Below, piece by piece: positions 12,428 through 64,000 of a stretch of DNA of 64,000 bases. Under the pieces are notes generated by a model that saw nothing but the letters and a program-made list of their open reading frames with translations, did not search any database and was not told where the DNA came from. Position 1 is the first letter of the stretch, and every line of letters begins with the position of its first letter. The position numbers were made by a program, and so were the translations under genes. The DNA is taken from the IMG/VR virus record IMGVR_UViG_3300046003_007892, positions 176,364 to 240,363 of that record, one strand, 5' to 3'.

Positions 12428-12433
12428 TAAATA
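12428..12433 (+). promoter_or_regulatory. Putative late promoter TAAATA
   Basis: 4 nt before ATG 12438. Confidence 0.6.
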
Positions 12434-12437
12434 GGGT

Positions 12438-12938
12438 ATGCGGTATATCGATCTCATCTTGGAGAACCATCTCGACGAGTCTCCGCTCGACGATGACGTC
12501 ATCATCCACAATCCGTCTATCGCGGACATCAACAACCTCCGCACTCTAAGTGTGATGAGCCGGGAAGGCGTCCGCGCCATCCTGACGCCGACCGACATGT
12601 ATGTCTGGAACGGTCACTGGATGAGCACCCGTGAGGCCTGCCGGGTGCTCGGCCTCTCACCAGATTACGTTTGTGCTCTGCGGCTTCTCCGCAATGGCAT
12701 CGAATGGGACGTTGACCGCTTCAACAACGGGCGAACGCCCGACGCGAGGTTTGACCTTCGGGAAGAACACGGCATCATCTATCGGAACGTGACCCTGAAC
12801 CGCCTATACGGTCACGACTTCCCCATCCTGGGTGATGACGGTGGTCGGCTATTCGACATCTACGACGAAGAGGAGGGCGGCTTCGGAGTAGATTTCTTCT
12901 TCGATGACGATGACGTCCTGCGCACCGACGACGAGTAG
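12438..12938 (+). CDS. Putative virion-internal protein, NP..LR..YVW module
   Basis: Leader MRYIDLILE; HNPSIADI...VRAIL..TDMYVWNG; paralog of 13262. Confidence 0.7.
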   Translation: MRYIDLILENHLDESPLDDDVIIHNPSIADINNLRTLSVMSREGVRAILTPTDMYVWNGHWMSTREACRVLGLSPDYVCALRLLRNGIEWDVDRFNNGRTPDARFDLREEHGIIYRNVTLNRLYGHDFPILGDDGGRLFDIYDEEEGGFGVDFFFDDDDVLRTDDE

Positions 12939-12939
12939 G

Positions 12940-13236
12940 TCATTCCGATCTTAGCTTGAACTCCGCGAGGTCTCTCCGTACCCAGTCCGCTTCCCCGTGT
13001 TCGAGCCTGATGGTGACGTCATCTGCCGATACGTCCAACTTCAAATGCCATCCCCGCTTACTAGATAGCCACCACAGGCGTCCAATCACGCCCATGTCGT
13101 GAAGAAGACGAACTTGGTGGGCGTCGCAGCGATGATCTCGGTAACCATTTCCGGGATATTCGAATTCAAGTGCCCACATGACCAGCAAGGCTTGTTCGGC
13201 ATGAGTGAACTCGTTGTTCGTGAACGTCGTCGCCAT
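12940..13236 (-). CDS. Hypothetical protein
   Basis: Fills gap between the two paralogs; start MATTFTN. Confidence 0.5.
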   Translation of the reverse strand: MATTFTNNEFTHAEQALLVMWALEFEYPGNGYRDHRCDAHQVRLLHDMGVIGRLWWLSSKRGWHLKLDVSADDVTIRLEHGEADWVRRDLAEFKLRSE

Positions 13237-13252
13237 CCGAATCCTATAGGGT

Positions 13253-13258
13253 AAATAT
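13253..13258 (+). promoter_or_regulatory. Putative late promoter TAAATA
   Basis: 3 nt before ATG 13262. Confidence 0.6.
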
Positions 13259-13261
13259 GGG

Positions 13262-13777
13262 ATGCGCCGCAATATCGATCTCGCTGCAAGTCTCCTCGAA
13301 GGTATTGCCTACCAGGACCACAACTTCGTCATTCTGCAAAACCCGACCGTGGCCGAGATCAAAAGCCTGCGGGGCAAAACCATGGCACCAAACAGCAAGG
13401 ACGGCCTTCGTGCGATTTTGACTGCGACTGACCTGTTCGTCTGGAACGGATACTGGATGACCCACCACGATGCCGCCCAGGTTCTCGGCGTTGCCGAACA
13501 CGCCGACTTGCACCTCAGGGGTAAGCGGATTGACTGGGACGTGGACGCTTTCGAGGGCAACTGGGACACCGAGGGACCGATGGCGGATAGGATGCGGACC
13601 CAGCATGCCATGATCGTCACGCATCCGACGCTGCTCCGCCTATACGGCGGGTCCATCTCCGTAATGGGCACCGACTATACTGAGGGCCCGGACGCCCCGT
13701 TCGACATTTACGATTCGCATGGTGGCGGTCGCGGGTACGAGTTCTTCTACGACGAGAACGACAACCTCAAACGCTGA
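13262..13777 (+). CDS. Putative virion-internal protein, NP..LR..YVW module
   Basis: Leader MRRNIDLAASLLE; QNPTVAEI...LRAILTATDLFVWNG; paralog of 12438. Confidence 0.7.
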   Translation: MRRNIDLAASLLEGIAYQDHNFVILQNPTVAEIKSLRGKTMAPNSKDGLRAILTATDLFVWNGYWMTHHDAAQVLGVAEHADLHLRGKRIDWDVDAFEGNWDTEGPMADRMRTQHAMIVTHPTLLRLYGGSISVMGTDYTEGPDAPFDIYDSHGGGRGYEFFYDENDNLKR

Positions 13778-13778
13778 T

Positions 13779-13963
13779 TGCGACCCGGTGGGGCGCCGTC
13801 CATCTCTGCCCCGCACGCTCTGTGCCGAAGGCGAAACTTTCGGGATACGCATCCCCATCACGAGCATCACGGTTGGTTGAGCCGCCTACTGACTTGCTGG
13901 GCCGACGTCCGAGTATCCCCTCGACCGGGCGGCCACATCGCCAGCTTTCTCCACCGGGTCGCC
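13779..13963 (-). ncRNA. Candidate ~185-nt structured ncRNA of unknown class
   Basis: Perfect 12-bp terminal stem GCGACCCGGTGG/CCACCGGGTCGC (13780-13791 / 13951-13962), internal helices, cUUCGg loop on minus strand, upstream promoter placing +1 at the stem, no credible ORF. Confidence 0.6.
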
Positions 13964-23538: not shown

Positions 23539-23544
23539 TAAATA
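23539..23544 (+). promoter_or_regulatory. Putative late promoter TAAATA
   Basis: Upstream of MRTFLHIME gene. Confidence 0.5.
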
Positions 23545-23563
23545 GGTGGTTATGAACCATCCT

Positions 23564-23845
23564 ATGAGAACGTTCCTCCACATCATGGAGGCCACTCGCC
23601 TTGAAGAGTGGGGACAGGTCGTACCGGGAGTGAATACCTCGGTTGACGTTGGCCCCGGCGAGATCGCAACACAGGCTGCAAAGTTCGGAAACGACGTCAG
23701 TGAGAAGGGTGTCCCCCCGCTACTGATGACCCAAGATGAAGACCAGCCTACCGAAGAAAAACTTGACGAAGATGGCGACGATGGTATCCCCGATCTGGAA
23801 GTCGCCTACCAGTCTATCTTGACCAAAGGAACATCAGGACTATGA
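23564..23845 (+). CDS. Small acidic protein with LxE leader (start could be 23552)
   Basis: MRTFLHIMEATRLEE. Confidence 0.6.
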   Translation: MRTFLHIMEATRLEEWGQVVPGVNTSVDVGPGEIATQAAKFGNDVSEKGVPPLLMTQDEDQPTEEKLDEDGDDGIPDLEVAYQSILTKGTSGL

Positions 23846-24447
23846 GCGGAATGCGCGGCATCATCGACGCGGCCACGGCTGTGAAACCAGGACTCTACCC
23901 GACTTTCGAACTGTGGAGCGTGGCCGCCAATGCCGCCCTGCTGCAAGGCTACGGCATCGACTATCCCGACGCTGGTGCCGACGAGGACGACCTTCATCGC
24001 TGGTATCAGGACCATCTCGAACGCGGCGAAAGCGTTCAGGACTGCGCCCGAGCCTTCGCTGAGGATTACGATCTCTACGAGCCCGACGCCATTACGGCCC
24101 AAGACCTCAAACGCACGCATCCCATCCCGCCCCCGCCCACGAGCGCGCTGGAAGAGGATGAGTCCGCTCCGGGACCCGGTCCCCATGCCAATCCCGATTT
24201 CCTCCTGAAGGCGGCGTATGATGCCTTGAACGCGGTTCCTCGCACGCGCCTCTACGGTCTGTACGCGGATTCTTACAAACTCGCGGCGGCGGTGGGTGCC
24301 TATCAGCAGGGAGACAAGACCGTTCCGCTGCCTGACCTCCTGAAGTCCTGCAAGGACTTCCTCAATGCGGCACGCAACACCCGCCTCAACGGGCCCTTTA
24401 CAGACACCTACGCGCTGGCGCACGCCTTCGATCTCGCGAAAATCTGA
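23842..24447 (+). CDS. Hypothetical protein with internal ~40-aa duplication
   Basis: ATGA overlap; LLKAAYDALN..RTRL.G...DSY.LA repeated. Confidence 0.65.
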   Translation: MSGMRGIIDAATAVKPGLYPTFELWSVAANAALLQGYGIDYPDAGADEDDLHRWYQDHLERGESVQDCARAFAEDYDLYEPDAITAQDLKRTHPIPPPPTSALEEDESAPGPGPHANPDFLLKAAYDALNAVPRTRLYGLYADSYKLAAAVGAYQQGDKTVPLPDLLKSCKDFLNAARNTRLNGPFTDTYALAHAFDLAKI

Positions 24448-26504: not shown

Positions 26505-26957
26505 TCAAGTGGGCTGGTTCTGCTCCATTTCGAGCAGGAAGTCGAATATCTTCCTCGTGAGCCGCACGTCGCGCTCGCAGTATACGAGCATGGCCGGGGT
26601 CAGCTTCGAGAAATCGCTGTGGTCGCCCTTGGGGAAGTCGAAGATTTCGCCCCACTCCCGCAAGCCGTGCTTCTGCATCTCCTTGACGAGCTTCCGTGAC
26701 ATCTCGCAGGTGTCATAGATTTTGTCCAGTGGGATATCGACGAGCCCGTCAGTGAGACGCTTGATCTGCGGGGCATCGAACGTCTTGAAGGCGTGTCCGA
26801 CCACAAGGTCAGCCTCCATGAGGAGCATCAAGCCTTCGGCAACGTTCTCGCCAGTGTAGTTGACATATTCGTCAGTTTCCCAGTCGAGCACACCCAGAAC
26901 AAAGATTTCGGTTGGGGAGAAGCCGTCGCACTCCACATCAGCCACTAGAATAGTCAT
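26505..26957 (-). CDS. Stand-alone DEDD 3'-5' exonuclease (Pol A proofreading-domain-like)
   Basis: ExoI ADVECDG, ExoII VGH....FDAP, YDT..MSR, ExoIII YCERDV. Confidence 0.8.
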   Translation of the reverse strand: MTILVADVECDGFSPTEIFVLGVLDWETDEYVNYTGENVAEGLMLLMEADLVVGHAFKTFDAPQIKRLTDGLVDIPLDKIYDTCEMSRKLVKEMQKHGLREWGEIFDFPKGDHSDFSKLTPAMLVYCERDVRLTRKIFDFLLEMEQNQPT

Positions 26958-27430
26958 ACAAGCTTTCTGAGGTCTTCGAGAACAGCTTCCAGTTCCCATA
27001 CCTCTGCATTATTCTTGAGTAGATTAGCACGAGCGGATATCACTCGTATATTTTCTTTTACATATCCTTTTCTGTGGTCAATCCGATCTATTGATACACT
27101 ATCAGGGCAGTATCCTTTGGAAGTTCGTTTTCCTTGGTAGCTTACTAGCTTGATACCCAAAACGGGGCACCGATCTGGAATGACGATGTCTTCAGGAGTT
27201 AGGTCGTAATCTAGTCCTAGTTTTTTGGCGCGATATTTGAGGCGGTAGCATATTCTGCTAGGAGCATTGCTGTTCGCCGCCGCCCGAGCCGAGATAATTT
27301 TGTCTGGGTGCTTTGAAGCGAAGGTCTTGTTTCTATAGCGGTTGCCGCAGATGTCTTCGCAATAGCGGGCTTGTCGTCCGCGATGGGGTCCGATTACTTC
27401 ACTACAGTTTCTACACGTTCTAGTTTCCAT
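26954..27430 (-). CDS. HNH endonuclease, probable homing endonuclease
   Basis: CPVLG, SVSIDRIDHRKGYVKENIRVIS.RAN.LKN; visibly more AT-rich than flanks. Confidence 0.8.
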   Translation of the reverse strand: METRTCRNCSEVIGPHRGRQARYCEDICGNRYRNKTFASKHPDKIISARAAANSNAPSRICYRLKYRAKKLGLDYDLTPEDIVIPDRCPVLGIKLVSYQGKRTSKGYCPDSVSIDRIDHRKGYVKENIRVISARANLLKNNAEVWELEAVLEDLRKLV

Positions 27431-27434
27431 CATC

Positions 27435-27440
27435 TATTTA
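27435..27440 (-). promoter_or_regulatory. Putative late promoter TAAATA
   Basis: 4 nt before ATG 27430. Confidence 0.55.
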
Positions 27441-28431: not shown

Positions 28432-28437
28432 TAAATA
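28432..28437 (+). promoter_or_regulatory. Putative late promoter TAAATA
   Basis: 20 nt before ATG 28458, AGGAG RBS between. Confidence 0.55.
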
Positions 28438-28457
28438 CTCCACACTAGGAGTTCAAC

Positions 28458-29228
28458 ATGCGCGACTTTCTCAAGATCATCATGGAAGCACAGGCCCCGA
28501 AGCCCGGCTTCGCGACTACCCACCGCTACCCGGACGGTGAAGTCTATCACACTGAATACGACGCCCCCGAAGAGGGAACTCGGGTTCGTGATCGCAACAC
28601 CGGTCGAGAAGGTGTCATGCAAGGCTGTGAGCCGAGCCACCACGGTGAAGAGTATTCGCCCGATTGCTTCGTCGCGTGGGACGATGATCAGGACCCCAAA
28701 ACTCCCGAGACCCCCTATGTCGCGCGCACGACCCTGGCTGAGATCGAGCCCCTCGAACCGGCCGCCACGTCTGCCGCCCCGATGGCCGAAGGCCGCGCAG
28801 GAGCGTTCGCCCGCCTCCTCATGCTGGAACGCCTGAACAAGCCCGCCGAGACTCCAGTCTTCAAGGGCAAATATCACGACGTCGTTCCCAACAGCGGTAA
28901 GTTCGACGTCATCGTCCGTAACACGGGCAAGGTTGTCGGCACTGGTTATGGCTCCACTGCGGAGGCCATTGGTAGCGCGAAGCTCAAGGACTCGCGTTCG
29001 GATGGTGAAGACGTCGGCGCGAATTTGAGAAACCTGGAAGTCGCAGAAAGCGAACACCATGAAGTCGTTCCCAAGGGGACGAAGTTCGACATCCGTGACC
29101 GGTCTTCTGGGCGCACGGTCGGTATGGGATATGACAGCGAGGAAGCGGCGGAAGAAAGCGCGGTCCTTAAAGATCGCCGCAAAAACGGCGAAGACGTCGG
29201 CAACGGGATGCGAAACTTCGACGACTAA
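28458..29228 (+). CDS. Putative virion-internal protein with tandem C-terminal domain duplication
   Basis: Leader MRDFLKIIME; two copies of H.VVP...KFD.....G..VG.GY.S...A...A.LKD.R..GEDVG...RN. Confidence 0.7.
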   Translation: MRDFLKIIMEAQAPKPGFATTHRYPDGEVYHTEYDAPEEGTRVRDRNTGREGVMQGCEPSHHGEEYSPDCFVAWDDDQDPKTPETPYVARTTLAEIEPLEPAATSAAPMAEGRAGAFARLLMLERLNKPAETPVFKGKYHDVVPNSGKFDVIVRNTGKVVGTGYGSTAEAIGSAKLKDSRSDGEDVGANLRNLEVAESEHHEVVPKGTKFDIRDRSSGRTVGMGYDSEEAAEESAVLKDRRKNGEDVGNGMRNFDD

Positions 29229-29560
29229 CTGATCGTCGCGGTTTCCAGGCCGGGCTTAATCTCCATCTCGATCACCGCTGCATCTCTGTACGATGCCGAT
29301 GCGCGAACGCGGATGTTGTCCGCAATATCGGCGAACGCCTGTATTTGCTGGAGGGATACCGCCTCATAGAAGGTGATCTCGGCTTCGCGGCTGCCGTGGT
29401 CGTAATGGACCGGGTGGGCTGTTTCGATGAGGTCGATCTGCATCTTGGCGCAAACTCCCTTCAGCATGGAGATGATCTTCATCTCAGCCTCCGCGCTGGC
29501 ATCCTCTGCCGAGAAGTCGAGTTCAGATTCAGCGAGCAGGAAAGAGATGTAATCGGTCAT
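29225..29560 (-). CDS. Hypothetical protein with LxE leader
   Basis: MTDYISFLLAE, directly after TAAATA. Confidence 0.65.
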   Translation of the reverse strand: MTDYISFLLAESELDFSAEDASAEAEMKIISMLKGVCAKMQIDLIETAHPVHYDHGSREAEITFYEAVSLQQIQAFADIADNIRVRASASYRDAAVIEMEIKPGLETATIS

Positions 29561-29564
29561 CCGG

Positions 29565-29570
29565 TATTTA
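29565..29570 (-). promoter_or_regulatory. Putative late promoter TAAATA
   Basis: 4 nt before ATG 29560. Confidence 0.6.
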
Positions 29571-33843: not shown

Positions 33844-33844
33844 C

Positions 33845-42532: not shown

Positions 42533-43011
42533 TTAAACTCATCGCCTATTGGCAGATGATCGGTGGTCTGTGGTGGCTGTCTGCGCCGATGTTTGGCGCA
42601 GCATCCCTGATCGCGCATGACAAAGGGTTCGATGTGGCCCCGGCGTTGGCTGTCGCATCCATCATGTCGTTCATCTCCCTATTTGTGAGCTACATCACCC
42701 ACAGCGAGGCCCGAGACGAGTTCGAGGATGAGAAGCGTTTCTATAAGCGCGCCATTGAAGAAAAAATCGAAAAGGTCAAGCGGGCGCATGAGCACATGAT
42801 TCGCCAGCAACAGGACATCATCAACGCTGATGAAAAGAAGAAGAAGAAAAACAAGAACAAGAACTTGATCGCCGAAGCGGCGAAAGGCGAAATGATCTAC
42901 GACCCCGATACTGGGGAGGAACTCGGCCGTCTCGACATCGCCGCTCTCGAACGGGATTTCTTCGCGGAGCCGGGCTCCCATTTCTATGGACCGTGGCGTC
43001 TGGACAAGTAA
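42529..43011 (+). CDS. Membrane protein with two TM helices and coiled coil
   Basis: ATGA overlap; hydrophobic N-half. Confidence 0.6.
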   Translation: MIKLIAYWQMIGGLWWLSAPMFGAASLIAHDKGFDVAPALAVASIMSFISLFVSYITHSEARDEFEDEKRFYKRAIEEKIEKVKRAHEHMIRQQQDIINADEKKKKKNKNKNLIAEAAKGEMIYDPDTGEELGRLDIAALERDFFAEPGSHFYGPWRLDK

Positions 43012-43014
43012 ATA
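43009..43014 (+). promoter_or_regulatory. Putative late promoter TAAATA
   Basis: 4 nt before ATG 43019. Confidence 0.6.
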
Positions 43015-43018
43015 CGTG

Positions 43019-46045: not shown

Positions 46046-46363
46046 CTACGCTTCGTCGTTGCCCTCAGAGAGCTTGAGCATCATGCAGAACCGTTCCCAG
46101 TCGGACTGCAAGGCGTGGTCGCGTTTGATCGCATCCATGAGGGTGTCGAAATCTTTCCCCATCTTGATGTATTTGCCCACCAGAGCCACGGCACCCGGAC
46201 CTCCATCGCTCGGCAGTTGAAGGCCTTTCGCCCGCAGAGCAATAATTGCGGCGCGGCCGATGTCAGCCAGCCCATCTAGGGCTTCGGCGCGGGCCCGATA
46301 GCCCTGTGCCTGAATGAGTTGAGCTTTGAGATCGGCGATGATTTGGTCGGCGGTATCAGCCAT
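46046..46363 (-). CDS. Coiled-coil protein with W..F...KL motif
   Basis: KRDHALQSDWERFCMMLKL. Confidence 0.65.
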   Translation of the reverse strand: MADTADQIIADLKAQLIQAQGYRARAEALDGLADIGRAAIIALRAKGLQLPSDGGPGAVALVGKYIKMGKDFDTLMDAIKRDHALQSDWERFCMMLKLSEGNDEA

Positions 46364-46868
46364 TTGGTCCTTGGTTGGCTAGCATTCCGGCGAGGCTCTT
46401 CTCTGCATCCTGCTGTCGCTGGCGCATGAGGTCTTCGTGGGAATGGTAGCTCTGTTGGTTTTGAAGTTTCAGAGCCCGGCAGACGGGCTTGTAGCGGGTG
46501 ATCATGTCCATTTTGACGCCCGTATCGGTATTGAACAGGACGTCCATCCCCTGCCCGTGCAGGACCGTCTCGTCGCTTTTCTCCCAGTAGTCGAACGAAG
46601 AGAAATCAGAGCCGGTGTCGGCAATCAGGCATTTCGCGGCAGTCTCGGCGAACGCCGGACCAACCTCACCCATCTCAATCAAGTCGTCGAGGACGAAATC
46701 ATGCTGCTGGCTCGCATTGCCGGACCAGACGATGAGCTTCGACGGTCCAGCCCAGCCGCGAAGGTCGTGCTTCTTGACCAACTCGGTGAGTTCCCAATGC
46801 GAGGGGTTGACCCACAGCTTGGCGTCGGGGAGTTGGATGACCTGAACTTCGCGGATGATTTCTTTCAT
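46356..46868 (-). CDS. Putative virion-internal protein, NP..LR..VW module
   Basis: Leader MKEIIRE; WVNPSHWEL...DLRGW...LIVWSG. Confidence 0.65.
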   Translation of the reverse strand: MKEIIREVQVIQLPDAKLWVNPSHWELTELVKKHDLRGWAGPSKLIVWSGNASQQHDFVLDDLIEMGEVGPAFAETAAKCLIADTGSDFSSFDYWEKSDETVLHGQGMDVLFNTDTGVKMDMITRYKPVCRALKLQNQQSYHSHEDLMRQRQQDAEKSLAGMLANQGPNG

Positions 46869-46872
46869 GGAA

Positions 46873-47343
46873 TTATTTAGCCACCGTGGTGATGATGGTC
46901 TCGGCCAGGGCTTCGATGCTGGACACCAGCGGGATGTCGAAACGGCGGCAAATGATCTGCACGTTCCCCCGACGATAGAAGCCCCTCGGGCAACAGACCA
47001 CGACCTTGCCCGAACGGGCGGTCAAACCCAGTTCAGCCATGGTGACCGGGGCCTGACTGCCGGGAGCGAAATAGAAGACGATGTAGGTCGCCGCATCCAA
47101 GGCGTCGAGTTCCCACTCGACCTGAGCCCGGAACACCGAGTCCGAGATGTCGTTGTCGAGGTCCGCGTTCCAGTTGTCGCGGCGCGGATTCAGGACCGTG
47201 ATGTCGTGCCCGGCGAACCGGCCCGTGATGTCGGCTTGCCAGTCCACGGCCCGCCCGTTGTCGATGCTGCCCGCGAGGAACACGCTCGCCTGTCCCTCGG
47301 GAAGGACGAGGGCGTGGGGTGGTTTGATGACGGTGAAGGGCAT
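46873..47343 (-). CDS. Nucleoside 2-deoxyribosyltransferase-like protein
   Basis: VFLAGSI, DWQ, VLNPRR..W, QVEWE..AL..A, AP.T..ELG. Confidence 0.8.
   Translation of the reverse strand: MPFTVIKPPHALVLPEGQASVFLAGSIDNGRAVDWQADITGRFAGHDITVLNPRRDNWNADLDNDISDSVFRAQVEWELDALDAATYIVFYFAPGSQAPVTMAELGLTARSGKVVVCCPRGFYRRGNVQIICRRFDIPLVSSIEALAETIITTVAK
46874..46879 (-). promoter_or_regulatory. Putative late promoter TAAATA
   Basis: 5 nt before ATG 46868. Confidence 0.55.
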
Positions 47344-50920: not shown

Positions 50921-50948
50921 AAGATACACCACGTCAGTTTCTTGTCAA
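50921..50948 (-). promoter_or_regulatory. Sigma70-type early promoter
   Basis: Minus strand TTGACA-N16-TATCTT. Confidence 0.7.
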
Positions 50949-53236
50949 GTAAATGATTGCTCTTTTTCGCGCTTCTTCGATTTCGCACGAGCGGAGGACT
51001 TGGCGAACGTCATTCCGTCCACGAACTTGATGCGGTATTTGGAATGCAGATCGTTTTCCTCAATGAGGCGGTCCACAATCGCCATGGCCTCGAAGCTATA
51101 CCGGTAGCGGCTCACCAGCATGGAATTCAAGGTTCCGTCTTTCCACGCCCCGTAGTGGGCTTCAACGTCTTTGTCCCGAAGGAGCAAGAGACTGGAGCCA
51201 CGCGGAATTTTCAGGGACGGGGAGTTGACCAGCCATTCGGATTCATCGTTGAAAACTTTCGAGAGTCTCGCGAGCGCGTCCACCAGAGCGACCTGAATGT
51301 CTTCGACGCGCAGTTCGGTCTCGAAGTCCTGCGTGGACCAGTTGTTCCACTCTTTTGCCGCCGCCAGGAGGCTCTGGTAGAGGGCCTGGGAGAACTCCTG
51401 CGGGCTGTTCGGGCGGAAGCCCAAACGGTCGAACTCGTCTCCGGCCTTCCAGCCCAGATTGTTGTATTCGATGGCGTGGGCGACGTTGGGGTTGATCGAT
51501 TTCATGGTCGGCGTCATGTAACCGACGATGTTGTTGATCATGCCCGTGCGACCAAGCTTGGTCTCGGGGTCCTTCGCCCAGATGCGATAGATGGCGCGGA
51601 GGTTGTCGGCGCAGAGATAGTTGGGGTCATCGTAGGCGACCTTCTCGATCTTGTTAGCAGCGAACACAGCCTTGGGGTCCATGACGAGGCAGCAGTTGCC
51701 CGACGTATGGAAGAAGTTGAGCATGATCTGACGGCTGTCCGAGATGCCCTTGACGCCGTGGAGTTCCATGTTGGCGATGTCTTGAAGAGCCCGCATGCTT
51801 TGCTCGTGTTCGCGGTCGCTGGTCGGCAGGCGAGTGACGAGCCAGAACTTGGTCGGGTCGGTATTTTCGACCAAAGTCTTCTGACTTTCTTCGACCTCTT
51901 CTCGTCCGCGAATCATGCGCAGGAAAGAGGTGGTCTTCATCATTCTCTCAAGGCCCTGGCCCGAGGCCGTGAGGGCGTATCCTTCGAAGTTGATCAGCGA
52001 GCCGCCGCGCCAGTCGGTCCCTGCAATGTGGGGCTCGTGTGAGACGGGGAGGAAGATGTGGAAGCGGGTCGGGTAGTGATCATACGAAATCCCCAGTGCC
52101 TTCATGACGTTGAGGTGGATGTCCGCAGACGCTTGCCACACATAGGTGTTCTCGCCATCCGATACGCCTCGGAGATCGTCGCCTCGGTCCATCATGGCCA
52201 GCACTTCCGCCTTGCGGGGGTTCACGGTCACCTTGACGCCTTCGGCCCATTCGATGCGGCCTTCTGAGAGGTAGCCAGGACGCTTGCCTCCCAGCATGCA
52301 GATTTGCTCGCTCGCGCCTTCCTGGCGGGCTAGAGCGGTATAGAAGGCCGGGTTGGCGATGAAGGTGCCTTCGCCGCCGTAGATGGCCTCGGGGAGCATT
52401 GAGAGGGTCTCGTCGAGGAGGGTCGGACCCAGGAGTTCGGGAACCACCATACCGGAGCATCGGGCGAGATCGGCCGTCTCCGGGGTGACGTAGCCCCAGA
52501 GGGGGAGTTGCTGACTGGCGGTCTCGAACCCACGGAGGACCATCTCGGGCTTACCAACGGCGGCCATAACCTTGAACATCCCGCTGCCCTGCATGCGGGT
52601 CGCGAGGTATCCGGTCTTGTCGCCGTAGAAAGTCCAGTTGCGGGCTCGGCTCTCGAACTTGGCAGCCGTCCAGTCACCGAACACCCGATGGGCTTCCTTG
52701 ACCCCGATGGCGTTCGGGCCCGACGACGCACCTTCGAGGATGGCGTTCGTGCGCAGCTTTTTCTCTTTGGTCTTGTGCTTGCCCGTGGAGGGTTCGGCGA
52801 AAATCTCTGGCCCGAGCAGGATTTTGCCCCGGTAGGGTTCGATGCTTTCGATGTCGAGCTTGGAGCCGTTGTAGGTGATCGTGACGTGCGAGTTGTAGTC
52901 ATCAAACTTCCACGCGGCGCCGTGATCGAGAAAATCCTGCCAACGGGAGTTGAGGTGATCGTTCTGGATGGTGAGCACAATCGCGCCGCCATCGAACTCA
53001 ACGATCTCGCGCTTGTCTGCGTTCTTGACGCTAACTTCTTCTTTGCCCTTGCCGCATTCAGACCAGACTACTGGGTCCGCCGAATGGCAAACAGTGACGT
53101 GGAGGTTGGACATGACAGTCCTCATACCCTGCTCTTCTGCCCACTCTTCAATATCGGCAATGTTCAACACTTTCCTCTTTACATAAAGGGGTCGTGCTTT
53201 TGCTAGTTTCGAGGAGGCAAGTTCATCTAGTCGCAT
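50945..53236 (-). CDS. Multidomain protein: N-terminal Acb1/T4 gp57B-like 2H phosphoesterase, GNAT-like module, NP..LR..YVW module, possible ART-like C-terminal module
   Basis: Start MRLDEL (763 aa); PLYV.RKV, HVTVCHS, GA.WKFDDYNSHVTITYN, LGPEIFAE = two HxT motifs. Confidence 0.8.
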   Translation of the reverse strand: MRLDELASSKLAKARPLYVKRKVLNIADIEEWAEEQGMRTVMSNLHVTVCHSADPVVWSECGKGKEEVSVKNADKREIVEFDGGAIVLTIQNDHLNSRWQDFLDHGAAWKFDDYNSHVTITYNGSKLDIESIEPYRGKILLGPEIFAEPSTGKHKTKEKKLRTNAILEGASSGPNAIGVKEAHRVFGDWTAAKFESRARNWTFYGDKTGYLATRMQGSGMFKVMAAVGKPEMVLRGFETASQQLPLWGYVTPETADLARCSGMVVPELLGPTLLDETLSMLPEAIYGGEGTFIANPAFYTALARQEGASEQICMLGGKRPGYLSEGRIEWAEGVKVTVNPRKAEVLAMMDRGDDLRGVSDGENTYVWQASADIHLNVMKALGISYDHYPTRFHIFLPVSHEPHIAGTDWRGGSLINFEGYALTASGQGLERMMKTTSFLRMIRGREEVEESQKTLVENTDPTKFWLVTRLPTSDREHEQSMRALQDIANMELHGVKGISDSRQIMLNFFHTSGNCCLVMDPKAVFAANKIEKVAYDDPNYLCADNLRAIYRIWAKDPETKLGRTGMINNIVGYMTPTMKSINPNVAHAIEYNNLGWKAGDEFDRLGFRPNSPQEFSQALYQSLLAAAKEWNNWSTQDFETELRVEDIQVALVDALARLSKVFNDESEWLVNSPSLKIPRGSSLLLLRDKDVEAHYGAWKDGTLNSMLVSRYRYSFEAMAIVDRLIEENDLHSKYRIKFVDGMTFAKSSARAKSKKREKEQSFT

Positions 53237-53261
53237 TGGTTCCACTATACAGGGGTCGGGG

Positions 53262-53267
53262 TATTTA
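53262..53267 (-). promoter_or_regulatory. Putative late promoter TAAATA
   Basis: 25 nt upstream of ATG 53236. Confidence 0.55.
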
Positions 53268-54340: not shown

Positions 54341-54679
54341 ATGTTCTGGAAAAAGAAAAAGGTCACCGAGATCACTGCACCGGTTCCCGATGAACCCCGC
54401 GTCCGCACCGTCGTGTTCGATGCCGACACGTTGGAGCGCGCCTATCGCGATGTGAAGCATGTCGGGTTCTCGCGCTCAGTGATGAACTCCGACAACGTCC
54501 TGGCTCTCCTCATGCTGGCCAGAATGGGGCTCGAAACAGTGCCGGGGAAAGTCTTCACGCTGTCGATCACGACCGGCGCGGCCAGTCTGGATTCTCTGGC
54601 CGACGTGGCTGGGGTGCCCCAGATGCGTCCGGCAACTCCTTCAGAGGTGTTCGAAGAATTGCACCCGCCGCTCAGTTAG
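54341..54679 (+). CDS. Hypothetical protein
   Basis: Abuts upstream stop. Confidence 0.55.
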   Translation: MFWKKKKVTEITAPVPDEPRVRTVVFDADTLERAYRDVKHVGFSRSVMNSDNVLALLMLARMGLETVPGKVFTLSITTGAASLDSLADVAGVPQMRPATPSEVFEELHPPLS

Positions 54680-55257
54680 GGGAACCGCTGCACCCAGCGT
54701 TCACCAGCCGCGATCACCGCCATCGTTTCGGCGTCGTTTGGAAGGGCTTCACGAACGCATTCGCAGTAGCGGGCGAAACCTGCTCGGTCGATCATCAGGC
54801 CCGTGATGTAGCGGTCCAGGTTGTTCACGTCGCCGAAGACGCATTCTTCGAGTTCGTCATCCCCGTCGCCAAAATCCACCATTTCGAGACCATCGCTGTG
54901 GAAGCATACGGAAAAGAACTCGTAGTCTCGGTGTAGGGCTTGTCGGTTGAACTCCATGACTACGCCTTGGCCACCAGCAATCATTTCTGCTTTGTGGGAT
55001 ACGAGTTCGTGATCTTCCTCGAACTTGGTGTAATCGAAATCGCTATACTGGGATAGCTGGCCCCGCCGAGCGAGATCAATTGCGCTCCCGCAGAAACGCT
55101 TCGCGACCTCGGGGTCGAGGGTGAAGCTAGCTTGGTCTTCGCCGCCGTAGGCGCCAATCATGTTGTGATGTGCAATGAAGCAGAACCCCGTCATGGACGT
55201 CCCGTGATAGAGATGCGCCGGACGCTGTGATTCCGTCAGATTCATCCACTCGCGCAT
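54676..55257 (-). CDS. ADP-ribosyltransferase-fold protein
   Basis: Leader MREWMNLTE; LYHGTS, SFTLDPEVAKRF, GVVMEF, DELEECV. Confidence 0.65.
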   Translation of the reverse strand: MREWMNLTESQRPAHLYHGTSMTGFCFIAHHNMIGAYGGEDQASFTLDPEVAKRFCGSAIDLARRGQLSQYSDFDYTKFEEDHELVSHKAEMIAGGQGVVMEFNRQALHRDYEFFSVCFHSDGLEMVDFGDGDDELEECVFGDVNNLDRYITGLMIDRAGFARYCECVREALPNDAETMAVIAAGERWVQRFP

Positions 55258-55258
55258 G

Positions 55259-55582
55259 TTAGCCCACAGTCTTCCTGATCGCGCGGTTCTCAGCCATGGC
55301 GATGGCCTCGGCCTTGCGGAGCAACAGGAGATCGAGGCCAAGCGACTTGAACTCTTCCTTGATGTCGCCCTGGAGGGTCAACCAGTCGTCGCCAACGCGC
55401 TTCATGATGGCGGTTCCGGCCGGGCGCCGGTTGTAGAAGACCGTGTAGGCGATGTTGTCTCCAACGCGCTCTTCTTCGATATTCACGAGCTTCATATCCG
55501 CAGAGACGTCTTCGTCAATCTGCTGGACGGGGAGTTTGAGCGTGGGGTCGATGCGCTTGTAGTGTTCGAGGAAGCTGGGCAT
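55259..55582 (-). CDS. Hypothetical protein, GNAT-like fragment
   Basis: Leader MPSFLE; IKEEFKSLGL..LL...AE. Confidence 0.6.
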   Translation of the reverse strand: MPSFLEHYKRIDPTLKLPVQQIDEDVSADMKLVNIEEERVGDNIAYTVFYNRRPAGTAIMKRVGDDWLTLQGDIKEEFKSLGLDLLLLRKAEAIAMAENRAIRKTVG

Positions 55583-55586
55583 GGCT

Positions 55587-55592
55587 TATTTA
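55587..55592 (-). promoter_or_regulatory. Putative late promoter TAAATA
   Basis: 4 nt before ATG 55582. Confidence 0.6.
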
Positions 55593-58008: not shown

Positions 58009-58392
58009 TTAGTTGTCGTAGGGGTCGATGCCGTTCCACAGGTGATTGCCATAGGAATCGCCTGCGTTGTCCTGACCGTCTTCGCGATGAGTGATCGGGA
58101 TGCCCATACGGTCGGTTCCAGAATAACCGGAATGCCCATCGTCGCTATAGGCGGAGCCGACTGCACCCAGGCCGGGGTTCGAGATACCGGCGTTTTCCAG
58201 AGCCGCAACGGCGACGTTGTAAAGACCCAGAGCGGCGGCGGCATAGAGGAACAGCTTGGCGAGTTTGTTTTTCCCGCCGCTTTCTGCGAGAATTTTGTCC
58301 ATCGCCTCTGCGAGGAGGTCTTTCGACTTCGACTTGGATTTTGACTCCACGAGAGGCGTTTTGGCCTCGATGATGTCGATCAAATTTCTCAT
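58009..58392 (-). CDS. Small protein with LxE leader and hydrophobic helix
   Basis: MRNLIDIIE..PLVE..LLAE; AAAGGA RBS. Confidence 0.65.
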   Translation of the reverse strand: MRNLIDIIEAKTPLVESKSKSKSKDLLAEAMDKILAESGGKNKLAKLFLYAAAALGLYNVAVAALENAGISNPGLGAVGSAYSDDGHSGYSGTDRMGIPITHREDGQDNAGDSYGNHLWNGIDPYDN

Positions 58393-58417
58393 AACAGTGA
58401 TCCTTTAGGTTTTGATT

Positions 58418-58423
58418 TATTTA
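58418..58423 (-). promoter_or_regulatory. Putative late promoter TAAATA
   Basis: 25 nt upstream of ATG 58392. Confidence 0.5.
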
Positions 58424-60015: not shown

Positions 60016-60021
60016 TAAATA
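60016..60021 (+). promoter_or_regulatory. Putative late promoter TAAATA
   Basis: 4 nt before ATG 60026. Confidence 0.6.
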
Positions 60022-60025
60022 TGAG

Positions 60026-61531
60026 ATGCGTCGGTTCATCGATCTCTCTGAGAAATTCCACCACGGCTTCGTCCCGACCTACAATCGCGGTAAGCCCTGC
60101 GAGGTGTTCAAGAACCCCGACCGGTCTGAGGTCCGCAAGCTGAAGGCCGATATGGATGAGGTTCGCGCCTATCTGGTTGGCGACGACATCTTTATGTGGA
60201 ACACCTATCAGTCCCTGCACCGCACGGTGCACGACGAACTCAAGCTTCCTGCTGACGCTCTCCCGATCATCATCTACGGCGACGTGGACGACGAGGCCTC
60301 GGTTGTGGTCACCGACGCGAGTAGGTCCACGGTCTGGCACCATAATGCCGAGACGCGTGGAGCCATCATGGCCCATCCCTACTTTGCCCGCTGCGAAGAC
60401 GTCGAAGTCTCTTACTATGACGAAGCCATCGTCGGACAATGGCATGACCCCAAAGGCGAGAACGAGGATTTCGTTGCTCATTTCATGGGTGATGAATACG
60501 GCGACGACAGTATCGACCATGGTGCCGAAGACCCCGACGACGATGGCTTCACCGACGAAGAGCGGGCCCTGCACGAGGGCATGGCCCTGAACCTCTTTGA
60601 ACTCTCGGGCCCGTCTCAAGAAGCAGCTAATCAGAAATTCGCCGCCTATGCGAAGAGCCAACGAAACGGCAAGCCCGAACTCTTCGGCACGTCACAGCGG
60701 GCCAACCCAGGCCTCTTTCACGGCACCGGCTATTTCACCTGGATGTGTGAGCACGTCGGTGATCTCTCCCACCGCATCGCCGACAACGCCGTCAACTCCA
60801 CCTGCGGGTTCGAGACCATGAACGAGAAAGTCGGGAAGGCTCTCGACAAGCTCCGCTCAGGCTCCTTCGGCCGCACGTTCGCGAGGACGGTAGTGGAAAA
60901 TGTTCGAAACAATTATCATTACGGAGTTGAGGTCGGTCGCACGACCGGCTCCTTCGAGGAGTTCGAGACCGAGTGGCGCGACGCCTCCAAGCTCTATGGC
61001 GCCGCACACGCTGCCCTCCAGCCCTTCAACGATGCCCAGATGCATTGTCGGGATGCGGCGGTCGCGCTCGGGAACCATGACTGGCTGAAATGCCTGAAGC
61101 ATCTCGAAGTCCTCGCGGCCCACCTCGTAGATCGCGAATCCTGGCAGGCCTACGCTGGGGCCTTGGCCTTCACTCAAAATGAGAGCTTTCGCGGACGTCT
61201 GCCATTCGACCCCGAAGACGCAGTGACGAACCCGAGCGCGAAACGTCTGATGGCCATGGTGAAGAATGCCACCCATCAGGATTTGCGCGGCCTCTACGAC
61301 GGAACCAACCTGTATTTCTGGGACGCCAGCCTTGGCGTTCACTCCCACGTCGCCCCGGCGATTGGTCTCGAATACGATTATCTCAAGAGGCTCAACGTCG
61401 ATATCGTTTACGGCGGCGTGGAGATCACATGGGACGAGGGTGTGCCCAAGGAGGCCATCGCGAAACGATACGGTGACCTGGGTCGATTCAAGACCGCCCA
61501 GACCTTCGAGTTCGAGGGTGCCCTGTCATGA
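60026..61531 (+). CDS. Modular putative virion-internal protein (A-B-A architecture)
   Basis: Leader MRRFIDLSE; two NP..LR..YFW modules flanking an EHVGDLSHR module. Confidence 0.75.
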   Translation: MRRFIDLSEKFHHGFVPTYNRGKPCEVFKNPDRSEVRKLKADMDEVRAYLVGDDIFMWNTYQSLHRTVHDELKLPADALPIIIYGDVDDEASVVVTDASRSTVWHHNAETRGAIMAHPYFARCEDVEVSYYDEAIVGQWHDPKGENEDFVAHFMGDEYGDDSIDHGAEDPDDDGFTDEERALHEGMALNLFELSGPSQEAANQKFAAYAKSQRNGKPELFGTSQRANPGLFHGTGYFTWMCEHVGDLSHRIADNAVNSTCGFETMNEKVGKALDKLRSGSFGRTFARTVVENVRNNYHYGVEVGRTTGSFEEFETEWRDASKLYGAAHAALQPFNDAQMHCRDAAVALGNHDWLKCLKHLEVLAAHLVDRESWQAYAGALAFTQNESFRGRLPFDPEDAVTNPSAKRLMAMVKNATHQDLRGLYDGTNLYFWDASLGVHSHVAPAIGLEYDYLKRLNVDIVYGGVEITWDEGVPKEAIAKRYGDLGRFKTAQTFEFEGALS

Positions 61532-61944
61532 GGCTTGCAGAGATCATGGAGCGGGCTGGCCCTCAGACCTACATTCGTTTCGGGGATATCCCGGCTAGCG
61601 GCCGATCTGGCATCGGTGCCTCGACGAACCAGTTCACGCATGCCCGGAGACGCGGTGACGAAGAACTAGGGGTGTCCGTCTACCCGGCTCGCTTCGACCG
61701 AGAGCTTCAGAAATGGATTCTGGACTGCAACAACTACGCGACGCTGGGCGAACTCGTCTCCCGTGAGCGACCCGCCTTCGTCGTGACTGGCGATCACGTC
61801 ATCGACCCCGATTATGAAGCCCCCGCTTACGGACAGGACAGCGAGCCCCTGTTGACCAATGTCCGGGTTCTCCGACCGGTCACCTACCAGGAAATCATCG
61901 CACCCGGCTGGGGCGAGACCTCAACCATAGACGAAATGGTCTAG
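61528..61944 (+). CDS. YIRFG/GVS/EPLL domain protein
   Basis: Leader MRLAEIME; ATGA overlap; homologous to C-half of 62654. Confidence 0.7.
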   Translation: MRLAEIMERAGPQTYIRFGDIPASGRSGIGASTNQFTHARRRGDEELGVSVYPARFDRELQKWILDCNNYATLGELVSRERPAFVVTGDHVIDPDYEAPAYGQDSEPLLTNVRVLRPVTYQEIIAPGWGETSTIDEMV

Positions 61945-62378
61945 AGGTAAGCCGCTTGATCTTCGCGGTGGATGGCGAAGCGTTCTCCCCACGACAGCCG
62001 GAACAGCATCCGGTCGGCGGCAGTGCCGAACACCATGAAACCGATGCGGGACCGGAAGTTAAGCTCCCACGTGCCCGAGATATTCTCGCTCAACCATATT
62101 CTCAGTTCCTGCCGGGGGACCAGTTTCTTTTCCCAGTTGACCGCCCAATAGCGCGCAGGAACCCAGACCTCGTGTTCGGCCAGTTGGTCGATCTCGTCGG
62201 TATAGGGTCCGGCTGGCATGGGGGCTCCGAGGAAAATGTCGCTGCGACCGGGTCTGGAGTTTTCAAGGGCAAGGCCCTCCCTGTTGTGAACGGCCTCCTG
62301 GCAGAGGCGATCACCGAGACGCTTACGGCGTTCCAAACCAGGGCTTTGCCAGTCCCTCGTTCTTCCCGCCACGTCCAC
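61941..62378 (-). CDS. Hypothetical protein (F...D..LF.L.WG family; start uncertain)
   Basis: Ends MVFGTAADRMLFRLSWG; upstream TTGACA-N16-TACAAG (62394-62421). Confidence 0.55.
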   Translation of the reverse strand: MDVAGRTRDWQSPGLERRKRLGDRLCQEAVHNREGLALENSRPGRSDIFLGAPMPAGPYTDEIDQLAEHEVWVPARYWAVNWEKKLVPRQELRIWLSENISGTWELNFRSRIGFMVFGTAADRMLFRLSWGERFAIHREDQAAYL

Positions 62379-62425
62379 CGCAGCAATGTCTTTCTTGTAA
62401 AGGAAATCGCGTGGCTGTCAAGCCT

Positions 62426-62587
62426 TTAGTGGATAGTCGCCGAGCAGGGCAGCATGATGAACTCGACGACGGACAGAGGACGACCAGGAACCACGGCGGG
62501 CGTCATGCCTGCGATGGAGGTCTCGATGTGAGCAGTGAGGACATCTCGCCAGTTGGCACCGAGGGGTTGGGGGCGTTCGTCTTTCAT
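62426..62587 (-). CDS. Small 53-aa hypothetical protein (below ORF-track cutoff)
   Basis: MKDERPQPLGANW..., AGGAG RBS, upstream TTGACG-N16-TACAAG (62612-62639). Confidence 0.5.
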   Translation of the reverse strand: MKDERPQPLGANWRDVLTAHIETSIAGMTPAVVPGRPLSVVEFIMLPCSATIH

Positions 62588-62643
62588 CGCAGTCTCCTGA
62601 ATTTCTCAATACTTGTAAAGCAAATGCAATAGCCGTCAAGGGA

Positions 62644-62649
62644 TAAATA
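62644..62649 (+). promoter_or_regulatory. Putative late promoter TAAATA
   Basis: 4 nt before ATG 62654. Confidence 0.6.
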
Positions 62650-62653
62650 TGCC

Positions 62654-63478
62654 ATGCGCGCCCACATCGATCTTGCAGCCAACATCCTGTTTGAAGACGC
62701 CGAAGACGATAAGCGTTCCTTCTGGCTCGAAATGCAGCCGCACTATCGCGGAACCGGAGATGCCCAATGGTCACCTTCGTTCACGTCCTGGCCACCTTCT
62801 CGCCAAGAACTCCTCTCCGCCGAGCGGCAGATCAACCAGCACCCAGAATGGATTGCCTACTGGGCTAAGTTCGGCTGGCGGTCATGGCAGGAAGCCGACA
62901 ACTACTACTACGACAAGCGAACACGCCGCGTCCGTTTCTACGATGTCCCCCACATCGCGAACATTCACGGAAAGTTTTCTCCAGATCGGGCATCCCTGGA
63001 GATCGACCTCGACGGAAACGTCCACGAGCGCGAATCCAAATACGCGCAGTTCTATATTCCGATGCCGTCCGCCATCCATGCCTGCATGGCAGTGGTGAAC
63101 AAGGTTCGGGCGAACCTCAAATATCTCGACGGGGAGTTCTACATTCGATTCGGCCGCTGGCGAGAGGGCGAGCAGTCTCGTAACGGCATCACGGGCGAAC
63201 TCGAAGCCGGAGTTTCGGCCTACCATGCCAACTACAATTTCGACGATGGTATGTGGGAGATCGACCCCACGGTCTCGGAAGAGTCGATCAACGGCACGAT
63301 GAACTCGTTCTTCTCCCGGCAGGACCAGAAAGTCTTCCTGGTTCAGGGACGGGAACTGGAGGAGTTGGGTTCGGATGATGAACCCCTCCTGAAGGACGTC
63401 CGTCTGATCAAGAAACTGACCATGCGCGACGTCTGCGTGCCGGGTATGTTCGACCCCGCTGATTTGTTTGACGTCTAA
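62654..63478 (+). CDS. Two-domain protein with C-terminal YIRFG/GVS/EPLL domain
   Basis: Leader MRAHIDLAANILFE. Confidence 0.7.
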   Translation: MRAHIDLAANILFEDAEDDKRSFWLEMQPHYRGTGDAQWSPSFTSWPPSRQELLSAERQINQHPEWIAYWAKFGWRSWQEADNYYYDKRTRRVRFYDVPHIANIHGKFSPDRASLEIDLDGNVHERESKYAQFYIPMPSAIHACMAVVNKVRANLKYLDGEFYIRFGRWREGEQSRNGITGELEAGVSAYHANYNFDDGMWEIDPTVSEESINGTMNSFFSRQDQKVFLVQGRELEELGSDDEPLLKDVRLIKKLTMRDVCVPGMFDPADLFDV

Positions 63479-63481
63479 ATA
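63476..63481 (+). promoter_or_regulatory. Putative late promoter TAAATA
   Basis: 4 nt before ATG 63486. Confidence 0.6.
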
Positions 63482-63485
63482 AGAG

Positions 63486-64000
63486 ATGCGAACTATCGAA
63501 CTTTTCGAAGCTCCCCTTGGACGGGTCCGTATCACCCGGACTCTCTCCGAAGACACGGCAGCGGCGCCGCCGCAGAAATGGCCCGCGCGTCTGGACGATT
63601 CGCGCATGATCGCCCGCTACATGGACAGCATCAGCAGCGACTACGTCGATGTCGATATGGTGGAGGAATACCTCCAAGGCGCACACGCCGATCTCAAGCT
63701 CGTCCCCATCGACGAACTCTCCGAGGGAAACCAGGACGCCAACATCCGAGACCCTCGCAAGGAAGCAAAATATTCGAAGCTCGATATGGCTACCATGCCG
63801 CCCCTGGTCGTACAGGACGGCGTCATCCTCGACGGTAATCACCGCTACCGTATAGCCAAAGCGAAGGGCGTCACCGCGCTGTGGTGCTATGTCTGCGACG
63901 ACTCCCTCACTGAGGTCGAGATTGGCGGCTACATCGAGAAGGGTGACTTTCCCGACAACCTCGACGACGACGATCTCTCCAGCGATCAGCTAGACCTGTC
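63486..64000 (+). CDS. ParB/sulfiredoxin-like domain protein, 3'-truncated (absent from ORF track)
   Basis: My translation: MRTIELFEAP...MPPLVVQDGVILDGNHRYRIAKAKG...LWCYV; open to window end. Confidence 0.75.
   Translation, partial: MRTIELFEAPLGRVRITRTLSEDTAAAPPQKWPARLDDSRMIARYMDSISSDYVDVDMVEEYLQGAHADLKLVPIDELSEGNQDANIRDPRKEAKYSKLDMATMPPLVVQDGVILDGNHRYRIAKAKGVTALWCYVCDDSLTEVEIGGYIEKGDFPDNLDDDDLSSDQLDL

Follow-up and report, generated by a model that had tools for sequence, protein, structure and literature searches.

The final 64 kb of the 240,363-bp metagenomic contig IMGVR_UViG_3300046003_007892 (= JGI Ga0485178_000005), called the window below (64,000 nucleotides; window position = contig position - 176,363; G+C approximately 59%), carry a dispersed set of phage genes with two features at their 5' ends. 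These are the hexamer TAAATA ahead of the start codon and a short N-terminal peptide, here called the leader, which ends in a hydrophobic residue, any residue and Glu. At least 15 otherwise unrelated, apparently late genes have such a leader, and the set probably comes to 23 or more. The features are listed in Table 1.

TAAATA occurred 18 times on the two strands of the window, against 3.6 +/- 1.9 copies in dinucleotide shuffles (18 copies reached in 0 of 100 shuffles). An ATG followed at a spacing of 4 or 5 nucleotides (N4 or N5) in 10 of the 18 copies, with 0.59 expected (binomial 5e-11); nine of these genes had the N4 spacing and one had N5. Another five genes had the hexamer at 19 to 30 nt from the ATG. 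All 15 sites, ten close to an ATG and five farther away, were present at the coordinates given in a preliminary description of this DNA. The 8-bp late-promoter box of T4, TATAAATA, was not kept in full, as the 6-mer TAAATA alone was constant and the two preceding bases varied. The stop codon of the upstream gene overlapped TAAATA, as its TAA or as a TAA at its 3' end, in three cases (43009, 63476 and 46874-), and likewise at the homologue of T4 gp15 encoded just upstream of the window. Most copies were intergenic. With overlap in only three window copies, a stop-restart signal does not explain the set, and the reading of TAAATA-N4-ATG as a stop-restart junction was rejected. An extra TAAATA was located at 38108 (-), approximately 90 nt ahead of the second (downstream) tail-fibre gene.

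Among the 90 genes called in the window, a leader whose [ILMFV]-x-E end falls in roughly the first 15 residues was present in 13 of the 15 TAAATA-led genes and in 15 of the 75 others (Fisher 1.6e-6). Three of the leader-bearing others were downstream operon partners (33843-, 55257- and 61528+). The association of TAAATA-N4-ATG with LxE leaders proposed in the preliminary description is therefore borne out within the window by both the spacing and the leader counts, and every leader peptide quoted there was found. Its statement that most products open with a leader held for the 13 genes, but not for 27430- and the 1370-aa fibre gene, and 53236- had only MRLDE. The gene at 26954..27440 (-) is a counter-example, in which a promoter of the leaderless-mRNA type comes without a leader peptide.

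The leaders had the form M-R/K-x-aromatic/hydrophobic-..-L/I-x-E followed by a small residue. In 51 leaders collected from the window, the upstream stretch, relatives and remote homologues, P3 was L or I in 46 and residue 2 was R or K in 39, whilst P1' was S, A, G or T in 33 of 49; lengths had modes at 9 and 13 residues. Several leaders have ATCGATCT in common. In an AlphaFold2 (AF2) model of the 13262 product, the leader formed a low-confidence N-terminal helix (residues 2-14) ahead of a globular module. A reading of the leaders as secretion signals was rejected: they are charged, and no signal-peptide-like stretch was seen except the hydrophobic segment in the cargo of 58009-58392.

Table 1. 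TAAATA-led and leader-bearing genes of the window, and leader genes of the upstream stretch; "late" is predicted from the promoter.
Span (strand)	TAAATA to ATG	Gene start	Gene	Leader and other content
12428..12938 (+)	N4	12438	166-aa gene	MRYIDLILE, then NPS..E / GLRA / VW.GY..TH.E module
13252..13777 (+)	N4	13262	171-aa gene	13-residue leader MRRNIDLAASLLE; 42% identical to 12438 paralogue
23539..24447 (+)	19 nt	23564	93-aa gene, then 198-aa gene	MRTFLHIME; second starts MRGIIDAATAV
26954..27440 (-)	N1 and N4 (two ATGs)	27430	159-aa Cys-rich gene	No leader, M(M)ETRTCRNC
28432..29228 (+)	20 nt (with AGGA)	28458	256-aa gene	10-residue MRDFLKIIME; cargo internally duplicated
29225..29570 (-)	N4	29560	111-aa gene	MTDYISFLLAE
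32791..42180 (-)	30 nt	42144	Late operon; TAAATA before 1370-aa tail-fibre gene, 38032-42144	
33845-38017 (-)			1390-aa tail-fibre paralogue, second in late operon	Mtd_N domain
32791-33843 (-)		33843	350-aa gene, last in late operon	MRFRDLKE
43009..43678 (+)	N4 (TAA = upstream stop codon)	43019	219-aa gene	MEYAHVLE
46356..46879 (-)	N5	46868	170-aa gene	MKEIIRE, then NPS module
50945..53267 (-)	25 nt	53236	763-aa gene	MRLDE; Acb1 16-148, NPS 326-387, C-terminal half of no assigned kind
54676..55592 (-)	N4	55582	107-aa gene, then 193-aa gene	MPSFLE; second: MREWMNLTE, LYHGT motif
58009..58423 (-)	25 nt (with AAGG)	58392	127-aa gene	MRNLIDIIE; hydrophobic segment in cargo
60016..61944 (+)	N4	60026	501-aa multi-module gene	MRRFIDLSE; NPS module x2; EHVGDLSHR module
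61528-61944 (+)		61528	138-aa gene overlapping 501-aa gene	MRLAEIME; YIRFGD module
62644..63478 (+)	N4	62654	274-aa gene	14-residue leader MRAHIDLAANILFE; C-terminal YIRFG module in common with 61528
63476..64000 (+)	N4 (TAA = upstream stop codon)	63486	Gene cut by contig end	MRTIELFE; LDGNHR
752-2446 (-), 5870-6679 (-), 7414-7998 (+), 15107-16170 (+), 16167-18401 (-) of contig L219			Upstream leader genes	

The DNA upstream of the window was read from Logan contig L219 (approximately contig 148-168 kb), 100% identical to the phage contig over a 10.7-kb overlap. The 20 kb that precede the window contained eight further leader genes. Five had the leaders MKTYFEIVAE, MRFHEILLE, MRLTE, MRYAELSE and MKFDDILLHE (LYHGT follows the last), and three formed an operon with the leaders MRQFISLAE, MRHLITLAE and MREIIDIVE, preceded by lipoprotein and Peptidase_C93 genes.

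The internal proteins and Alt of T4 carry an N-terminal capsid-targeting peptide that is cut by the gp21 protease after (I/L)-x-E, and they are injected with the DNA. In the T4 record, IPII and IPIII begin with MKTYQEFIAE, and the phage's own MKTYFEIVAE, behind TAAATA-N5-ATG, is near-identical to it. An (L/I)-x-E was also located within 6-10 residues of the start in T4 gp67 (MEGLIE), gp68 (MLLIPE), gp21 (MNEPQLLIE), gp22 (MLKEQLIAE) and gp24 (MAKINELLRE). The propeptides of T4-type capsid-targeting sequences (CTS) have 10-20 residues (PMC5694885), and T4 genetics assigned residues 4 and 7 of the CTS to targeting and residues 8 and 10 to processing (PMC9026906). The (L/I)-x-E ending of a CTS-type propeptide was found in 15 genes of the window and 8 just upstream. 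As claimed in the preliminary description, the leaders agree with the T4 CTS in length, in position-specific pattern and in the (L/I)-x-E end: both are tags of approximately 10 residues, basic at residue 2, hydrophobic or aromatic at 4 and hydrophobic at 7 and 8, with a small residue after the Glu.

N-termini of the same type were present in related phages on proteins encoded at the position of T4 gp67 (PA5oct 0150, MKINDIITE; phage UB, MLKDIFE; and copies in IMG/VR). Three PA5oct look-alikes, namely 0150, 0238 (MKIKDILVE) and 0230 (MRLDE), were flagged as virion proteins in ESI-MS/MS (tandem mass spectrometry with electrospray ionization), and PA5oct 0203 (MFNINDIL) is a virion protein also. 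The arrangement of TAAATA-N4/5-ATG plus leader recurred in contigs of 37%, 41%, 50% and 56-57% GC, and the maintenance of the pattern across such different backgrounds argues for selection on the peptide. Leaders were present on genes with 19-25-nt 5' regions and Shine-Dalgarno (SD)-like sequences, and on promoter-less downstream genes of operons; core genes of the leaderless-mRNA type (portal, 27430-) had none. As read from these gene arrangements, the tag is tied neither to one type of promoter nor to one cargo.

The cargo behind the leaders was modular. The 43019 product was 36% identical over 198 aa to residues 189-383 of the 60026 product (EH[IV]GDL[ST]HR module), residues 326-387 of the 50945 product resembled residues 390-452 of the 60026 product, and the 61528 product resembled the C-terminus of the 62654 product. 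Homologues of the 501-aa protein had other module orders behind the leaders MRSFMQIIKE and MRYKELFE. These cross-similarities substantiate the earlier claim of shuffled, unrelated modules behind the leaders. The NPS module (approximately 120 aa; NPs..E ... GLRA ... L.VWDGY..TH.E) was encoded in 12438-12938, 13262-13777, 46356-46868, 60026-61531 (twice) and 50945-53236 (residues 326-387). Its AF2 model in the 13262 product had a pLDDT of 87.5, with no fold match in the PDB and weak BFVD matches to Rhizobium phage proteins and a PolyVal ADP-ribosyltransferase (ART).

A HMMER scan with the 13262 product resulted in 32 representatives among 1.84 billion proteins, and 22 of 31 homologues had a leader at the start (P 1e-7 against a 25% background). 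Two homologues of this family, 1,967 and 2,722 aa long, were multidomain proteins with GNAT, joined in the shorter one by ART-PolyVal; the giant homologues P0129 and P0136 had the same leader type at the N-terminus.

TAAATA is the predicted late promoter of the clade to which this phage belongs. In phage Phosso it was located 25-32 nt ahead of tail-tube, tail-fibre and endolysin genes, in PA5oct it was located 20-30 nt ahead of the genes for many virion-detected proteins, and in both phages together it was present 20-32 nt upstream of tail tube, fibre, neck and baseplate genes. ATAAATA has been predicted as a late promoter in CBB and GAP32 (PMC5259590). The comparative evidence in this T4-related clade upholds the preliminary assignment of TAAATA to late transcription. 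Ordinary structural genes of the phage, namely the tail fibre and the gp15 homologue, were also TAAATA-led, and late timing of the tagged genes would follow from the same promoter.

The close spacing was also present at core head genes. TAAATA-N5-ATG (range N4-6) was almost always upstream of the small gene at the gp67 position (approximately 195 IMG/VR head-module loci listed), TAAATA-N4-6-ATG preceded portal genes and a gene of approximately 220 aa in head modules of the clade, and the phage's own gp15 homologue had TAAATA-N4-ATG. Because the abutment on the ATG at N4-N6 is conserved at these genes, leaderless late mRNAs are the simplest reading for the N4 and N5 genes. The T4 TATA box lies approximately one helical turn ahead of the start site (PMC2988020), which would put the start at or beside the A of the ATG; the N4 spacing then calls for a start 1-2 nt nearer to the box than in T4. 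Sigma70-like promoters (TTGACA-N17-TAxxxT) ended 6-10 nt before the ATG at window positions 10778 (+) and 21857 (+) and at the start of 55865-57100 (-). Early genes may also be leaderless, which hints that the host translates leaderless mRNAs well.

The phage is a high-GC member of the T4-related Rak2/PA5oct/Atu_ph07 jumbo clade, as judged by its genes. The upstream flank close to the window encoded the gp15 homologue (T4-gp15_tss, PF16724) together with seryl- and lysyl-tRNA synthetases. The nearest kin of the gp15 homologue were in Sinorhizobium phage Phosso (41%), Agrobacterium phage Atu_ph07 (39.5%), Pseudomonas phage PA5oct (32%) and Rak2-like phages. The major capsid protein of PA5oct is a gp23 homologue, and PA5oct 0152 is a T4 gp21 homologue (38% identity, E 2e-23). 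This kinship, the Phage_30_3 domain of the contig and the gp23 and gp21 homologues of PA5oct are the basis of the placement. In GenBank phages, no close relative was found for the fibre genes (megablast), the 501-aa protein, P0003 or the ART-like protein of L009.

Pfam and PHROGs gave almost no matches to the leader proteins; the 12438 product matched neither, the 28432..29228 product had a weak phrog_6742 match, and Atlas searches were uninformative for the 12438 and 62654 products. The 763-aa protein (50945-53236, -) was the exception, with a Pfam Acb1 (PF23474) match of 8.8e-30 (103.8 bits against a cut-off of 27) and both HVT motifs at approximately residues 45 and 116. Its residues 12-157 aligned with the C-terminus of the Pam3 portal protein (PDB 8hds_A 467-617; E 2e-19) with the HxT/S motifs in register, and it matched the Acb1 structure PDB 7t26 with E 4e-5. 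The Acb1-like module of the preliminary description is a genuine 2H-phosphoesterase Acb1 domain. The portal protein of cyanophage Pam3 has a C-terminal Acb1-like 2H-phosphoesterase domain and is a natural case of such a domain in a virion; the fusion is unmentioned in those passages of the Pam3 structure paper that the search covered.

The other three enzymatic labels of the preliminary description fared less well. For the ART-like label, the 193-aa protein (54676-55257) and the upstream MKFDDILLHE protein had LYHGT in common with ART-PolyVal proteins, and hhalign aligned residues 1-59 of the 193-aa protein to ART-PolyVal (probability 60%, E 8e-5, 59 columns); against it, this protein had no Pfam match and did not reach the gathering score of ART-PolyVal (PF18760). 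Two relatives were also below the PF18760 cut-off of 31.2 (L009, 23.7 bits; P0003, 16.2 bits), and the AF2 model of the 54676-55257 product was poor (pLDDT 48). The motif and the alignment stand, and the label is weak. The zincin-like label was not sustained. The 350-aa MRFRDLKE protein reads HRIGH where zincins have HExxH, so that the catalytic Glu is absent, and the structural resemblance was weak (TM-score 0.3-0.4 to M48/MA models, from a low-confidence structure); an Atlas search related this protein at 0.93 to viral clusters, some with LPD23/LPD1. The ParB-like label for 63486, a gene cut by the contig end, was not confirmed either, as the product had the LDGNHR motif only and no Pfam or PDB match.

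The tagged set is best explained, with a probability of about 0.6, as a greatly expanded and often leaderless version of the capsid-targeting/internal-protein system of T4. TAAATA would be read by a gp55/gp33-type late-transcription apparatus (Group 2 jumbo phages are reported with a minimal sigma factor and a gp33 orthologue; PMC7824862), and where it lies 4-5 nt from the ATG, transcription would most likely start at or next to the A and result in a leaderless mRNA. The N-terminal peptides would be the clade's version of the T4 CTS. The amphipathic leader helix would dock the protein on the scaffolding core during prohead assembly, a prohead protease of the gp21 family (S77) would cut after the Glu, and the freed cargo would stay in the head, to be released together with the DNA in the following infection. 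The sequence analysis itself establishes the motif statistics, the clade, the conserved promoter spacing and leaders, and the Acb1 domain; late timing, the start site, docking, cleavage and injection are inferred. For the Rak2-like phage 121Q, an inner body has been reported from bubblegrams (PMC7247149).

Because a tag of this kind would work on any cargo, the phage could have gathered 15 or more tagged genes in the window, with 8 more upstream. Its cargo would include Acb1, ART-PolyVal-like modules and domains that are elsewhere parts of giant polyvalent proteins, and the tagged set would be a pre-made kit for counter-defence and takeover. Given the tags, the phage probably ships a large ready-made enzyme kit with its DNA, including a nuclease against cyclic oligonucleotide-based antiphage signalling systems (CBASS). 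A more far-reaching proposal is put forward tentatively, at somewhat under even odds: that the clade's label (TAAATA, often with no 5' untranslated region (UTR), plus CTS) loads dozens of enzymes, including an active Acb1 and ADP-ribosyltransferases, as an unbundled polyvalent protein, and that counter-defence arrives before phage gene expression.

Several observations weigh against a T4-type targeting system. The leader is missing from some TAAATA-led genes, as reported above for 27430- and 42144-, and very short leaders exist (MRLDE, MPSFLE). A T4-like start, 6-7 nt past the box, would land at N4 on the T or G of the ATG, and a sigma70-like promoter look-alike lay beside the last gene of one upstream three-gene leader set. 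The loose [ILMFV]-x-E motif was present in 13 of 49 virion and 13 of 52 non-virion proteins of PA5oct (approximately 25% each), and is therefore unfit as a predictor. A head module and a gp21-type protease were not found in the contig by database searches and in the approximately 30 kb read upstream of the window, where no head genes were present. A search of IMG/VR with an alignment of major capsid proteins (MCP) matched more than 600 head modules of the clade, with the contig not among the best 80. The first of two degenerate DNA patterns for the head module had 0 matches and the second did not have the contig among the matches listed; a protein search with a high-GC MCP did not have it in the top 120.

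The leader might instead be an amphipathic helix with another role (oligomerisation, cytoplasmic docking, a degradation or timing signal, or membrane association) on proteins that act late in the producing cell and are not packaged. The equal frequency of the loose motif among PA5oct virion and non-virion proteins is in line with this, late expression of Acb1 could be useful by itself, and several leaders are too short for a 10-residue CTS. Such a role is nevertheless unlikely, as MKTYFEIVAE is near-identical to an experimentally defined T4 CTS, the sequence of L/I at P3, E at P1 and then a small residue is the pattern of a protease site, the same N-terminal type is present on the clade's prohead-core gene at the gp67 position, and the nearest PA5oct look-alikes are virion proteins.

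A second alternative is common descent only, with a cassette of promoter plus 5' end copied along by duplication and recombination, as at hyperplastic loci, and a peptide that has no selected function. Some cargo is indeed paralogous, ATCGATCT recurs in several leaders, and T4-type internal-protein genes are poorly conserved and variable between related phages (PMC9026906). Nucleotide similarity was confined to approximately 8-10 nt, however, and the leaders vary in length and sequence yet keep position-specific chemistry and are retained in distant homologues and different GC backgrounds, which makes this account very improbable. Least probable is a by-product of leaderless translation, in which selection on the RNA would hold the first codons to a form that lets ribosomes bind an AUG at the very 5' end. 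The strong association between leaders and TAAATA-N4-ATG and the frequent ATGCG at the gene start speak for it, but leaders are also present behind the SD-like 5' regions of 23564, 28458 and 58392 (19-25 nt) and on the internal operon genes 33843, 55257 and 61528, Arg-2 codons are both CGN and AGA, the peptide pattern is constant from 37% to 59% GC, and the core genes with leaderless-type promoters (portal, 27430) lack the peptide.

Compared with the T4 system of IPI, IPII, IPIII, Alt and gp21, the capsid-targeting system proposed for this phage has in common a TATAAATA-type late promoter, a tag that is portable between unrelated cargo, a gp21 homologue in the clade, and an ADP-ribosyltransferase among the cargo candidates (Alt in T4). 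It differs in size, with no fewer than 15-23 tagged genes spread across 84 kb where T4 has a handful, in its two length classes of leader (9 and 13) and in Arg for Lys at position 2. Many of its genes have no 5' UTR (TAAATA-N4/5-ATG), whereas T4 ipII and ipIII have Shine-Dalgarno leaders, and its cargo, which is known here from sequence alone, includes Acb1 and polyvalent-protein domains. At the internal-protein loci of Tevenvirinae, cargo is likewise exchanged fast behind a conserved promoter-plus-CTS cassette, an exchange that has been read as an arms race against restriction by the host (PMC9026906). These loci form small clusters; the set in the Rak2/PA5oct/Atu_ph07 clade is genome-dispersed and far larger. 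Among the open-access papers searched, none was found to describe CTS-tagged cargo or leaderless late genes for this clade.

Ejection and inner-body proteins of phiKZ-like phages and SPN3US are similar in that many head-internal proteins are delivered and a T4-related protease processes them after Glu (PMC5694885), but there the site is A/S/G-x-E and propeptides usually exceed 100 residues, whereas L/I-x-E after 8-14 residues is T4-like. Acb1 of T4 and its relatives is matched by a Pfam score well above the cut-off and by both HxT motifs; in this phage it forms the N-terminal domain of a 763-aa, predicted late protein with extra modules, and among solved structures it is closest to the C-terminal domain of the Pam3 portal protein, a virion component. 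Polyvalent proteins of phages and conjugative elements, reportedly delivered with the DNA (Iyer et al. 2017), have their counterparts in the ART-PolyVal-like modules, in LPD29 (upstream of the window), in the LPD-like 350-aa protein and in the NPS module of the 2-2.7-kaa proteins. The domains are mostly split here into small, separately tagged genes and not joined in one giant polypeptide.

Among the remaining genes of the window, the tandem tail-fibre paralogues (1,390 and 1,370 aa) had 25-30% identity. A protein of the T4 30.3 family (Phage_30_3, PF08010) was encoded, as were thymidylate synthase (Pfam), dCMP deaminase, GNAT, a 2-oxoglutarate (2OG) oxygenase, GroEL, ArgRS and the CCA-adding enzyme, and a dihydrofolate reductase (DHFR) is likely, judged from the N-terminus only. 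A cluster of the tellurite-resistance type (TelA, vWA-TerF-like, TerC, TerD) was present in this phage genome at 3538-7298 (+), and a gene with a GmrSD_N domain (type IV restriction-like) at 10778-11356 (+) had the sigma70-like promoter mentioned above in front. A single open reading frame at 14390-15244 (+) combined a CHAP peptidase domain with a PAAR motif and may encode a spike-tip protein with a cell-wall hydrolase. Outside this contig, a jumbo-phage-like stretch with a tRNA synthetase, ART-PolyVal and TAAATA-N4-ATG leader genes was present on a 1.136-Mb contig of an NCBI assembly (L011; GCA_043956695.1, JBINOA010003469.1). The same sequence was found again on a 113-kb Logan contig, and the 1.1-Mb contig may therefore be either mis-joined or a very large element.

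Should the tag act as it does in T4, sequence alone would suffice to predict the injected effectors of a large jumbo-phage clade whose members are mostly uncultured. If the reading of the label is true, the set of proteins that hundreds of uncultured phages inject could be read directly from their DNA, anti-CBASS and ADP-ribosylating activities could be delivered as protein at time zero, and giant polyvalent proteins and small tagged proteins would be two packagings of one arsenal. The leaders would then also supply a second CTS family, diversified in nature, with which foreign proteins could be loaded into phage heads. With its conserved TAAATA-N4/5-ATG arrangement, the clade would offer a natural system for the study of leaderless late mRNAs.

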